Sequence record: PV796108.1 | Length of the DNA: 64,000 nucleotides | Direction: 5' to 3' (one strand) | Shown here: in pieces, positions 7,392-64,000 of the stretch | Numbering within the stretch: position 1 is the stretch's first letter | Layout: the number at the start of each line of letters is the position of its first letter | The notes under the pieces: model-generated | Told to the model about the DNA's origin: nothing | Databases searched by the model: none | The model's input: the letters and a program-made list of their open reading frames with translations, nothing else | Program-made: the position numbers and the translations under genes

Positions 7392-7486
7392 TAATTTCTC
7401 CCCCTTTTTTGTTTATTTATAAATAATATATAGTCAAGCTTGCTTCGAACGTAACCTTTACTTAATAAATTATCAATATTTTTTTA

Positions 7487-7516
7487 TTGACATTTGGAAA
7501 TTATCTATCATATAAA
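7487..7516 (+). promoter_or_regulatory. SigmaA-like promoter
   Basis: TTGACA-N18-TATAAA in an intergenic region. Confidence 0.45.
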
Positions 7517-7903
7517 AGGTACTTCACGGCGGGTGCCCCTACCATTGTTCCTACATCGTGTACCTTTTCTACATGAAAAAGGAGACCTCCGTCATAGAAG
7601 TCTCCAGATAAAAAAAGAAAAAGAACCCTGCTACCAACAAGGTCCTTCTCTCTACAAAATTAGCGAATTAGTTTGTAAAATATTTAAGAATAAGCCCCAT
7701 TAAAAAGAAAATCGAACTAAAGGAATGATATGGCTATCGCCACAATAACCACATCTCTAATATAGCATAGCACTATATCTATGTAAATAGAAAAGAGCCT
7801 CTTTTCCAGAGAGACTCTCAACTAAACCAATATCATAAAAAATATGAAAGGAGTTAATCAACCAATGCTCTTATAGAGTATCCATTAGAATATTAATTGT
7901 CAA

Positions 7904-9016
7904 CTACTGTTTTAAAGGAGGGACATCAAGCCATAGCTTACGTATGGAGTGGTTCCCCGTATCAGCGAATAGATAACCTGAACCGTCCCAGATAAAGTCA
8001 ATTGGATAATCCATCTTTGCACTACCCTCAATACCATCTTTATATCCACGTTCACTACCTGCAACAAGGAATGCTTCATTCTTAGGTCCACCTTTAGGGT
8101 CTTTATATACCATAGACTTATACTGGTTCTCCCATACTACATAATACAATGCATTGTCTTGTCCTATCCATACATCACTCATAGAAGCAGTAGGGTCTTT
8201 CCAACGTACAATCTCTTTAGTCTCTCTTGGAGATAGTGTTATACGTATTATATATCCATTCTTAGTACTTACGTATATTTCATTATCCTTTACAAAGAAG
8301 TTATAAGGGTCTGGATATGATTCCGCCCCCGTCACTTGTTTCATCTCTCTTGTATCTAAGTCATACGTAAAGAATTGGAACTGATAGCTTTTACCCAGCG
8401 CCAGGATATAGAGTTTATTCCCTACACCTTTCATACGATAGATAGCATCCATCTGATTACGTTTTAATGTTTCCATAATACGTCTATCTAACTGATACAA
8501 CTCTTTATCTTTAACGGTATAGACTTCTTTTGTAGTAGCTAGATATACTTTATCAGTTACATACAATCCAGAAGCTATATCTGAAGTTTCTTTCGTCCGA
8601 GGTGTTCCACTTATATCTACAATGGTTTCTATGTTCTTACCATTATACATACGAAGTTTAGCTTCTCCGTGGTTACCATCTATGAACCAAATGTTTTTAT
8701 TCTTATCTATCTGTAGTTTACGAGGGTTAGCCATAGAGTTACTGTCTTGGTTAGCTGTCCCCGTACCTAGTATAGTAGATACTTCTTGGTCTTTACCTTT
8801 ACTAACTTTCTTTCCTTGTGGTTGTCCGCCCTGTACTGGCTTCCACCAGCTTTCCTCTTGGGCAGGGTACTCAAATGTACCATCACTGACTGTCTCTTGT
8901 TTAGCGGGCTGCTGGGACTGTTTAACGAGTTCCTCTGCTGTAGCAGGACTTACTGTTCCGCCTAGCGAAGGTATTAATAAAGTCAGAGCCATCCACGCTG
9001 AATTTACTATATTCAT
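7904..9016 (-). CDS. Secreted NHL-repeat (beta-propeller) protein
   Basis: N-terminal signal peptide ending ...PATA/EE; NHL-type blades ANPRKLQIDKNKNIWFID and GYKDG...DYPIDFIWDGSGYLFADTGNHSIRKL. Confidence 0.75.
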   Translation of the reverse strand: MNIVNSAWMALTLLIPSLGGTVSPATAEELVKQSQQPAKQETVSDGTFEYPAQEESWWKPVQGGQPQGKKVSKGKDQEVSTILGTGTANQDSNSMANPRKLQIDKNKNIWFIDGNHGEAKLRMYNGKNIETIVDISGTPRTKETSDIASGLYVTDKVYLATTKEVYTVKDKELYQLDRRIMETLKRNQMDAIYRMKGVGNKLYILALGKSYQFQFFTYDLDTREMKQVTGAESYPDPYNFFVKDNEIYVSTKNGYIIRITLSPRETKEIVRWKDPTASMSDVWIGQDNALYYVVWENQYKSMVYKDPKGGPKNEAFLVAGSERGYKDGIEGSAKMDYPIDFIWDGSGYLFADTGNHSIRKLWLDVPPLKQ

Positions 9017-61999: not shown

Positions 62000-62448
62000 A
62001 CATCAAGACATTAAGTATTCTTCATAGTAATTTAAGCGCAGAAGAAAGAGGTATTTTCTATAAAGACATTCTGCAAAAATTACATGAGAAGAGACAACAA
62101 AAAGATATGGTTTTAAATTTAACTGGTTTACCATATTCTAGTGCAAAGCATGTGCAACAGATGGAATGTGGTATGCCTGTTTATCTATTAAAGAACCCTA
62201 ACGTTCATGATAGATATGCTATTTCTGCTTATTTAGATGAAGAATGTACGCAACATGTAGGCTGGGTTAGTCGTGGCGGAGGTACTTTATTCCCTCAGGC
62301 ACAAGCAAATCATGAAGTTTACAGAAAAATTATCCAAAAAGAGAAATTTATTCTTGCATATCCGTTTAAAAGTGGATACTATATAACCAAAAGCTTGAGC
62401 AATCAAAATACTTTAGGCGTTATGAAACACGATGAAGTATTATATTGA
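61996..62448 (+). CDS. HIRAN-domain protein with C-terminal motif
   Basis: LTGLPY...VYLLKNPNVHDRYAISAY...HVGWVSR; ends SNQNTLGVMKHDE. Confidence 0.7.
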   Translation: MNIKTLSILHSNLSAEERGIFYKDILQKLHEKRQQKDMVLNLTGLPYSSAKHVQQMECGMPVYLLKNPNVHDRYAISAYLDEECTQHVGWVSRGGGTLFPQAQANHEVYRKIIQKEKFILAYPFKSGYYITKSLSNQNTLGVMKHDEVLY

Positions 62449-62650
62449 TATTCATTTTGAACAAGGGAGATAGTTTTTGTCTCTCTTTTTGAAAATGAAT
62501 ACGCCAAACAGTACCCGTGCAGAAAGGAACCCAAAAGAGTAAGCGTCAGCTGCACACGTAGGGGAATCATGGACTTTTGTTTTCTACCCTCTGGACTAGA
62601 GATATACCTCAAAACAGAGGGTATTTTCATAAATAAAGGAGGGTAAGACA

Positions 62651-63079
62651 ATGATTGATAAGTTAAAACACTTTGTAACATTTAGTGAAGCTTTAAAGAA
62701 AGAAACTGAACATGGTAAAGAATTTACTGTTGGTGGAAAGATAACCAGCATATTGAACACAACACACTTTGTTGATAAAATAGAAGAACCGAAAGATCAT
62801 TTTGTATACCTTATGTTGGACGATGCAGTTGGTGAGCAATCCGTAGCCTTACCTTTAGGTGCTTACGAACATGCAGTTGCTCGTTACGGCATTGGAGTAG
62901 GTTCTATTGTTTTAGTTCAAGGGATGTTACAAATCTTAGATTTTTCATTTGAGTACAAGGATAAACGAGGAATGATTTACAAGTCAAATGGTGTAAATCA
63001 TCCAGAACAAACTAAACGTATTGTAGGATGGAAAGTAACTCCATTACCTGAAGAAGTACCGACACTATCGAAGGATTAA
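62651..63079 (+). CDS. Stand-alone OB-fold protein resembling the DnaE (Pol III alpha) OB domain
   Basis: TVGGKITSI...YLMLDDAVGEQSVAL...YE...IGVGSIVLVQG. Confidence 0.65.
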   Translation: MIDKLKHFVTFSEALKKETEHGKEFTVGGKITSILNTTHFVDKIEEPKDHFVYLMLDDAVGEQSVALPLGAYEHAVARYGIGVGSIVLVQGMLQILDFSFEYKDKRGMIYKSNGVNHPEQTKRIVGWKVTPLPEEVPTLSKD

Positions 63080-63094
63080 TTTCCTTCGTTTTTT
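63069..63094 (+). terminator. Intrinsic terminator
   Basis: CGAAGGA / TCCTTCG plus T6. Confidence 0.75.
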
Positions 63095-63096
63095 AT

Positions 63097-63141
63097 GTGT
63101 GTAAAAGGTTCTTTGTCCGTTCGATTCGGGATACACACACC
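63097..63141 (+). other. tRNA-like minihelix (acceptor stem + T-arm, no D or anticodon arm)
   Basis: GTGTGTA / TACACAC 7-bp stem, T-arm GTCCG-TTCGATT-CGGGA, then A-CC. Confidence 0.5.
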
Positions 63142-63150
63142 TAAGTACAA

Positions 63151-63652
63151 GAGTAATGATGCATATACATAATCAGTGCCTCTTTGAATTGTTGCCAATA
63201 GGGGTGAATGGGTTTCGGCTAATTAAAACGTCCAGCTTCAGTATATTTCATTACTCTCCCTTATGGGAAAGCTCATACGTATCGTGTGGGTTTCCTCATA
63301 AGGGAGACAGCCATGTGACAGAAGTAAGAGTTATTGATCGTAGCTTCCTTGAAATCGAGATGCCAATAGATTCGTATAAGACAAGAGATTAAGAAGTTAT
63401 TCTTATGCCTGTTATCTTATATGAGTTGCGGCCTTACAGAGGTGTCTACTCTGATGCGAATGACCGTAGAAGCACTCTTATGAAAGTCTGAGGTGAATCT
63501 CTTATGATTGAAAGTAACTAGAACTTGCCGAGAAGGGGTAAACTCTGAACCCTTTGGACAGGTGCATCCTTCAAAGCATTAACTTCCTAAGTTCAAAAAC
63601 TTTCAAGTGAATGATAAGGAGTATGGGCTACTAACTATGCTCCTTGTTTTTC
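63151..63652 (+). ncRNA. Candidate large (about 500 nt) structured ncRNA
   Basis: Four multi-stem domains with G-U-rich long helices, ending in a hairpin (63617-63645) plus U-tract. Confidence 0.6.
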
Positions 63653-63801
63653 TTGGATATACAAGGGGGCTTATAACCCCACGTCTCATAATATCTCTTC
63701 CATAAATACGACATTTTAAAAATTAGGTAAGAGAGCTGGCACTCTTTTATCGGGCGATGTGCGTCGCCTTGTATATCTATTTTCTTAAAGGGGGAAAAGC
63801 A

Positions 63802-64000
63802 ATGAATCTTGTAAAGCATTTCTACAAACGATGGGTAGAGCGAGTAGTAAAAATCGAAGATGAAATTGAAGTTAATCGGTATGTTACAGAGAACCAAGAG
63901 TTAATTAAAGAACATGCGGAAACAATGTATTGTTATGCTACCTTTATGTACAAAGGACAGATTGGTGACCATGTAACTCGTAACTATTACATAAAAGATA
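63802..64000 (+). CDS. Partial hypothetical protein (runs off right edge)
   Basis: GGGGG SD; MNLVKHFYKRWVERVVKIEDE... open to the window end. Confidence 0.65.
   Translation, partial: MNLVKHFYKRWVERVVKIEDEIEVNRYVTENQELIKEHAETMYCYATFMYKGQIGDHVTRNYYIKD

Follow-up and report, generated by a model that had tools for sequence, protein, structure and literature searches.

To our knowledge, few phage and bacterial RNAs longer than 500 nt have a conserved, complex fold, and those described so far are ribozymes or lack a clear function, as is the case for ROOL, GOLLD and OLE. RNase P cuts not only tRNA precursors but also RNAs that mimic the acceptor stem and T arm of a tRNA, among them the precursors of 4.5S RNA and tmRNA, the C4 RNA of phages P1 and P7 and the M3 RNA of phage phi80; MALAT1-mascRNA is a eukaryotic mimic that is cut in the same way. 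The minimal unit that the bacterial enzyme recognises is a 12-bp stack of acceptor and T stems followed by an NCC tail, and in such RNAs it serves to define an end of the molecule. In tmRNA, the tRNA-like domain is built from the 5' and 3' ends of the molecule, and the tag reading frame has no start codon. Among the large RNAs, ROOL (RF03087) averages 581 nt and, like GOLLD, is often carried by phages or prophages of Firmicutes, where both often lie beside tRNAs with which they are possibly co-transcribed (PMC5737381). Homo-oligomeric cages have been reported for ROOL and GOLLD (bioRxiv 10.1101/2024.12.08.627333).

The locus described here resembles ROOL and GOLLD (RF03087, RF01998) in that it would specify a large, multi-domain, non-coding RNA of unknown function, about 555 nt long, phage-borne and preceded by a tRNA-like element. 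It differs from them in that it matches neither covariance model, that its genome holds no tRNA genes and that it appears in one phage clade as opposed to several phyla. It lies near the end of the window, by which we mean the whole stretch of 64,000 nt that was analysed and whose numbering is used throughout. The + strand from 63097 to about 63652 forms a real and conserved structure at the RNA level, which constitutes a new family of narrow distribution.

Genomic context

The window corresponds to positions 124001-188000 of the record of Bacillus phage Edson (PV796108.1; 233,813 bp), a jumbo phage whose host is B. cereus BC102p. The segment of interest, 63080-63800, is a non-coding gap of 721 nt that is 100% identical to Edson and, by blastn, 84.7% identical to a segment of equal length in the B. 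cereus phage vB_BceM_WH1 (WH1 below). The gap is unannotated in both records and is flanked by genes for hypothetical proteins of 142 and 196 aa, all on the + strand.

The upstream gene (62651-63079) encodes a stand-alone OB-fold of the PF01336 type. Its AlphaFold2 model, built from an alignment of 30 sequences, has a pLDDT of 90.7, and Foldseek matched it best to SSBs and to the OB domains with which AspRS and LysRS bind the anticodon; PF01336 itself is matched by seven of the 30 members of the family. Protein searches returned only the gene's own clade, and a profile search reached remote OB-fold relatives, which, in two of the three further phage contigs examined, have an RNase H-like gene on one side and the gene for DNA polymerase III alpha on the other. 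A terminator scan places the gene's own intrinsic terminator at 63069-63094 (hairpin 63069-88, then a run of six T), ending 2-3 nt 5' of the minihelix described below; the most diverged copy, L017, has a hairpin of different sequence at this position. The downstream gene starts at 63802 and is the first of a replication-module operon on the same strand as the RNA. Homologues of its 196-aa product, 35-42% identical, occur in large phages of Bacillus, Psychrobacillus and Lactobacillus (records of 132-160 kb), in which they are free-standing proteins that align with it from end to end, and relatives of the gene adjoin those for gyrase or DnaB. Since the relatives of both flanking genes have replication genes as neighbours, the RNA is an insertion within the DNA-replication module of the phage.

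Distribution

Five lineages were compared, in seven rows of alignment: Edson with L011 (about 99% identical to it), L012 with L013, L018, WH1 and L017. The copies with L numbers came from homologues of the flanking proteins in Logan assemblies and from a pattern scan of metagenomes, the latter being the source of L018. A blastn search in a distant setting against 50,697 phage records found Edson and WH1 only. No copy was found in IMG/VR by scans based on the proteins, on the RNA pattern or on the pattern of the adjacent conserved region, nor by scans of the GTDB species genomes, and neither the Edson nor the WH1 genome holds a second copy. A covariance model built on the RNA (R1) returned the seven known copies and no others. 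L014-L016, where the 196-aa gene has distant homologues, and L023-L025, where the OB-fold gene has remote ones, show no comparable gap, no minihelix and no blastn similarity to the element. As the distant homologues of the 196-aa gene are not preceded by such a gap, the element is restricted to one group of Bacillus cereus jumbo phages, the Edson/WH1 clade.

Fold and domain architecture

The + strand of 63080-63800 folds with -217.3 kcal/mol, compared with -183.2 +/- 6.9 in dinucleotide shuffles (z -4.94), which is better than chance, whereas the - strand stays near its shuffles (z -1.82). At least 14 G-U pairs of the model would be A-C mismatches on the opposite strand. The original prediction had read the many G-U pairs as selection on RNA, as opposed to palindromes in DNA, and this asymmetry between the strands favours that reading. 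It had also placed a densely paired RNA of about 500 nt at 63151-63652. That folded region is real; its start was set too late, since the minihelix at 63097-63141 belongs to the element as well. All the helices that had been listed were recovered, position by position, by direct reading, by listing of pairs and in minimum-free-energy and domain folds.

Four domains follow the minihelix, all on the + strand. Domain 1 (63151-63256) is closed by stems 63151-59/63248-56 and 63163-68/63241-46 and carries hairpins at 63178-63205 and 63206-63239; the predicted pairing of its outermost stem, with ATATAC/GTATAT and GCCTCT/AGGGGT inside, is present in the sequence and in the folds. Domain 2 (63256-63306) is a near-perfect hairpin of about 25 bp, in which the foreseen helix 63256-65/63297-306 is extended by GGAAA/TTTCC and by a G-U-rich apical helix, so that the upper half of the hairpin is rich in G-U pairs. 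Domain 3 (63310-63494) is the multi-branch core. Its outer stem runs through 63310-12/63492-94, 63317-19/63486-88 and 63324-31/63474-81, and the part of it that had been predicted, 63325-31/63474-80 enclosing TTCGTATAAGA/TCTTATATGAG and CAGAG/CTCTG, was found again; the interior has a junction stem (63343-47/63469-73), two hairpins (63348-59 and 63437-53) and the stem 63362-64/63430-32, inside which lies a long hairpin (63369-63427). Domain 4 (63508-63606) likewise has the expected closing stem 63508-15/63599-606 around GAACTT/AAGTTC (63521-26/63589-94), which leads into a long, irregular apical hairpin. A scan for helices at long range and for pseudoknots with covariation gave weak candidates that rest on single events, such as 63339-44/63425-30, and we claim none of them.

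The 3' end is marked by an intrinsic terminator at 63613-63655, in which a G+C-containing hairpin with a 14-bp stem (63613-48) is followed by a U-rich tract. The terminator scan thus agrees with the closing hairpin of the original prediction. The terminator is canonical in four of the five lineages, shortened in L012 and L013 and absent from L017, and its stem covaries.

Searches of the whole window against Rfam 15 with cmscan gave no match at gathering thresholds, and in 62400-64000 a search at E<=10 returned only chance matches of the miRNA hairpin type. The thresholds of the covariance models of GOLLD, ROOL, OLE, raiA, HEARO and other large Rfam ncRNAs were not reached, and none of these families appeared even at E<=10. 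Together with the covariation and the lack of a coding frame described below, this supports the view that the locus holds a structured ncRNA of large size, which may represent a new class.

A tRNA-like minihelix at the 5' end

The minihelix, designated H0 (63097-63141), was found by a motif scan and is supported by covariation. It has an acceptor-like stem of 7 bp (63097-103 with 63132-38), the 3' strand of which continues without interruption into a T-stem of 5 bp (63115-19/63127-31). A G-C pair closes an invariant 7-nt loop, TTCGATT, and stem, loop and closing pair make up a canonical tRNA T arm. A linker of 11 nt stands where a tRNA has its D and anticodon arms, and the 3' tail is an unpaired A-C-C in all lineages, extended to ACCA in WH1. 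The full pattern (7-bp acceptor stem, 5-bp T stem, UUCRANN loop closed by G-C, NCC tail) is kept in all five lineages; both stems are 97-100% paired, with two compensatory pairs each, and covary in L017. In a pattern scan, the architecture matched once in the window, compared with 0.003 matches expected per 64 kb from Markov shuffles, and it occurs only once in the 233.8-kb genome.

H0 itself was considered as a tRNA and rejected: it consists of an acceptor stem and a T arm only, ARAGORN found no tRNA in the window, and RF00005 had no match at E<=10 in the whole of the Edson and WH1 genomes. These genomes (230-234 kb) contain zero tRNA genes. The analogy with GOLLD and ROOL as RNAs that occur near tRNA genes, which had been drawn earlier, therefore applies to Edson and WH1 in a loose sense only, in that a tRNA-like minihelix directly precedes the RNA.

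With its coaxial stack of 7 + 5 bp, T-loop-like hairpin and 3' NCC tail, H0 resembles the RNase P substrates that are not tRNAs, and like them it lies beside a presumed functional RNA. It differs from them in being placed at the 5' end of a 500-nt RNA, to which it probably stays attached, and in having no sequence relation to them. Because H0 fits the minimal unit of RNase P, we infer that the enzyme would cut 5' of G63097 and that the minihelix would be kept as a stable 5' end. The presence of structured domains and of a very short reading frame next to a tRNA-like part also recalls tmRNA, but here the acceptor stem is closed locally and not by the ends of the RNA, and the short frame has a Shine-Dalgarno sequence and an AUG of its own. 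tmRNA was rejected as an identity for the element on account of this local acceptor stem and the absence of matches in ARAGORN and Rfam.

Conservation and covariation

All four domains are supported by covariation across the five lineages, as the original prediction would lead one to expect, though with so few lineages the statistics are indicative only, and related sequences can beat shuffles without any structure. In H0 and domain 1 taken together, 94.7% of the cells of 46 pairs are paired and seven pairs show compensatory changes; domain 3 has 58 pairs, 94.8% of cells paired and eight compensatory pairs, and domain 4 has 29 pairs, 95.8% and seven. None of 500 shuffles reached these values in any of the three cases, and controls in which the pairing was slid along the alignment were 30-51%, 36-49% and 22-52% paired, respectively. 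In domain 2, three pairs are compensatory: L017 has G-C for C-G and U-A for G-C, and L018 has U-A for C-G. Within domain 1, the hairpin 63206-39 changes from C-G to U-A in three of the seven rows and from G-C to A-U in L017. L017 is shifted by two columns at the closing stems of this domain in the alignment, so that the pairing counts for those two helices are understated; folded as a single sequence, L017 forms shorter stems there, AATCA/TGATT and AGATAC/GTATCT, each with a compensatory change. The clearest case is the stem 63521-26/63589-94 of domain 4, where the GAACTT/AAGTTC of four lineages is replaced by GGGAGC/GCTCCC in L017: five of its six pairs have changed, and it is still fully paired.

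The domains differ in what is conserved. Identity to L017 is 59% in domain 1 and 54% in domain 4, compared with 84% in domain 2 and 86% in domain 3, the latter being the highest sequence conservation within the RNA; the flanking coding sequences are 58% and 79% identical. Across all lineages, domain 2 is 84-98% identical. Despite the low identity, domain 1 of L017 has the same folded shape as that of Edson, and the two versions of domain 4 are likewise alike. With identities below or near those of the flanking genes and folds that agree, domains 1 and 4 keep their shape while their sequence drifts, whereas domains 2 and 3 are constrained in sequence too.

Coding potential

There is no protein-coding frame conserved across the lineages, and the longest frame that is open in all of them has 28 codons. 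An ATG-led frame of 20 codons that is common to all lineages shows almost only non-synonymous changes. Edson has a 78-aa open reading frame at 63156-63392, but it is truncated in L018 and absent from WH1 and L017.

The statement that the region holds no reading frame led by a Shine-Dalgarno sequence needs a correction, as it does not hold strictly. Direct reading of the alignments shows a Shine-Dalgarno-like GAGGTGA at 63490-96 on the + strand, followed after a spacer of 7 nt by the five-codon frame ATG ATT GAA AGT AAC TAG at 63504-21, and this layout (63490-63521) is invariant in all lineages; nothing longer is conserved. Edson would yield the peptide MIESN, L017 MIEGN and WH1 MIESK. The mini-ORF lies at the junction of domains 3 and 4 and overlaps the 5' strand of the closing stem of domain 4. 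An antiterminator driven by the mini-ORF was considered and found unsupported: the terminator persists in silico when 63492-63533 is forced to be single-stranded, and since opening this region does not melt it, a simple attenuation model has no support. One possibility is that GAGGTGA serves as an exposed anti-16S sequence.

An ultra-conserved region adjacent to the RNA

The + strand segment that follows, 63655-63790, is the most conserved part of the locus. Every lineage has 89-90% identity to Edson here, the other lineages hardly differ from one another, and neither flanking gene is as well conserved. A 12-nt inverted repeat (63655-66/63764-75) encloses three hairpins and an AT-rich spacer, and the segment (fold z -3.1) can be folded as a junction closed by this repeat, immediately 5' of the ribosome site that serves the 196-aa gene. 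The region is unique in the genome, and its motifs do not recur elsewhere in it. In L017, where the terminator is absent, domain 4 abuts the conserved region. The segment could be a promoter or operator, a leader RNA or an origin.

Evidence of expression

Two metatranscriptome runs from food fermentations gave one contig each, of 209 or 217 nt, at a word depth of 8-9x. The part that aligns to Edson is 63339-63474, and the loose ends are the L017 version of the flanks of domain 3, so that domain 3, from an L017-like phage, is the only part of the RNA seen in these contigs. The same runs yielded nothing on the downstream gene or on 63655-63790, a region 150 nt downstream in which L017 and Edson are 89% identical and which is therefore alignable. 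The contigs fit an RNA that contains domain 3 and is far more abundant than its neighbours; they are no proof of transcription, as DNA carry-over is possible, the L017-like flanks are in part too diverged to align with Edson, and the contigs may break at domain 2 simply through its inverted repeat. A third run, labelled RNA-Seq but probably DNA, holds a contig of 180 nt at 63428-63607.

Scans for sigma-A promoters gave no convincing candidate upstream of the minihelix or within 63655-63790. As a separate observation, Edson encodes a SigG-like sigma factor (record positions 7953-8585).

Alternative explanations

The most serious alternative, which we nevertheless regard as unlikely, is that all of 63097-63800 serves the downstream operon as a giant 5' leader that acts in cis, in which the body of the RNA and its terminator work as an attenuator or riboswitch-like sensor and 63655-63790 is the expression platform. 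The RNA lies directly upstream of the operon on the same strand, no separate promoter was found for it, and the best-conserved segment of the locus ends at a ribosome site; moreover, as L017 lacks the internal terminator and its domain 4 runs into that segment, the RNA is contiguous with the leader there, which keeps the reading of a single long leader alive. A candidate closing stem (63149-53/63651-55), with one compensatory change in WH1, would also span the element, though it requires read-through of the terminator. The arrangement is that of the T-box and riboswitch leaders of Firmicutes, which are structured, precede an operon on the same strand and end in an intrinsic terminator; however, the Edson RNA is two to five times larger, matches no T-box or riboswitch family, shows no antiterminator pairing and lacks the terminator in one lineage. 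A sensor of 500 nt would be far larger than known leaders, the orthologous gene is expressed in distant phages without such a leader, the terminator withstands the opening of the mini-ORF region in silico, and the metatranscriptome contigs fall on the core, leaving the conserved leader and the gene uncovered. The location within the replication module would also suit an RNA that belongs to an origin, that is, a pre-primer or R-loop RNA like RNA II of ColE1 (about 550 nt), the 3' end of which would feed an origin in 63655-63790. The neighbours of the homologous genes (RNase H-like protein and DNA polymerase III alpha in two of three contigs on one side, gyrase or DnaB on the other) speak for this, as do the inverted repeats, the AT-rich spacer and the uniqueness of the conserved region. 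We consider it improbable, given that the cumulative GC skew has no inflection here, that no iteron-like family of repeats is present and that in four of five lineages a strong terminator stands between the RNA and the conserved region.

The reading of the element as a self-splicing intron, degenerate or free-standing, or as another mobile ribozyme-like insertion between replication genes would fit its restriction to one clade, its absence from the syntenic site in distant relatives and the presence of at least one group I intron in the genome, in the split gene for DNA polymerase III alpha. It is nonetheless very improbable. The region has no group I or group II match at E<=10, and because the genome's real intron scores E 1e-7 in the same search mode, this mode would detect an intron in 63080-63800; the flanking genes are complete and separate, the upstream one with its own stop codon and terminator, and the bounds of the element are a tRNA-like hairpin and a terminator in place of splice sites. 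Still harder to sustain is the view that there is no functional RNA at all and that the signal comes from a DNA-level element (for instance, palindromes that bind a protein), a short coding gene or a fold that arose by chance. The 78-aa frame of Edson and the conserved five-codon frame with its strong Shine-Dalgarno site could be cited in its favour, yet the longer frame is lost in three lineages, on the - strand at least 14 G-U pairs would become A-C mismatches and the fold is near shuffles, and compensatory changes are found in every domain.

A proposed processed phage RNA

Against these alternatives stands the reading that we prefer and to which we give about an even chance: a stable, processed ncRNA that ends at a terminator and whose 5' end is cut by RNase P at the minihelix. 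The RNA would stem either from an unrecognised phage promoter or from a longer + strand transcript, one that passes the weak terminator behind the OB-fold gene. RNase P of the host would recognise the acceptor/T-arm minihelix with its A-C-C tail, and the cut before G63097 would leave the minihelix as a protective 5' end, with the terminator at 63613-55 setting and protecting the 3' end. The perfect hairpin of domain 2 is a possible further processing site, for RNase III. The core of domains 2 and 3 and the exposed GAGGUGA could then offer a surface to which a protein, the 30S subunit or further copies of the RNA bind, and domains 1 and 4, conserved in shape only, would be scaffolds. Some observations weigh against a processed ncRNA. 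One is that no promoter was found upstream of the minihelix, 2-3 nt before which the upstream terminator ends; L017, without the 3' terminator, is another, as the RNA there would extend into the conserved region and on into the next gene; and the RNA evidence consists of a few short contigs in which DNA carry-over is possible.

We speculate further, and more tentatively, that the Edson RNA founds a class of large phage ncRNAs that is new, in which a built-in minihelix makes and caps the 5' end and the core acts in trans during infection, where it might capture the 30S subunit through the Shine-Dalgarno-like site or form an RNA-only or RNA-protein particle tied to DNA replication. Should this be true, it would offer a mechanistic reason why ROOL and GOLLD sit beside tRNAs, namely that the enzymes of tRNA processing define the ends of the RNA. 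The built-in minihelix offers a concrete hypothesis for how large RNAs gain defined ends, and the site inside the replication module, beside an ultra-conserved element, is a place to look for the function. Unlike most RNA classes known from metagenomes, this one comes with a cultured pair, Edson and B. cereus BC102p, in which expression, processing, the phenotype of a deletion and the three-dimensional structure can be tested directly.

Other loci in the Edson genome

The DNA polymerase III alpha gene of Edson lies outside the window (L020:3891-8236, which is 191891-196236 of the Edson record) and is split into three open reading frames that encode PHP + NTPase-N, NTPase-C + finger, and HHH + OB, separated by gaps of 735 and 395 nt. 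The second gap holds a sub-threshold match to the group I intron family RF00028 (39.6 bits, E 1e-7; L020:6951-7295), and the first has no match in Rfam. Also outside the window, at record positions 196843-197726, is a gap of 884 nt that is free of open reading frames and folds on the + strand with a z of about -4.8; it has no Rfam match at E<=0.1. Within the window, the - strand of 7392-7903 is a gap of 512 nt that contains no open reading frame of at least 70 aa and lies near a change of sign in the GC skew at about 8 kb. It carries a row of strong hairpins, several of them followed by U tracts (fold z -4.4), and is probably a cluster of terminators.
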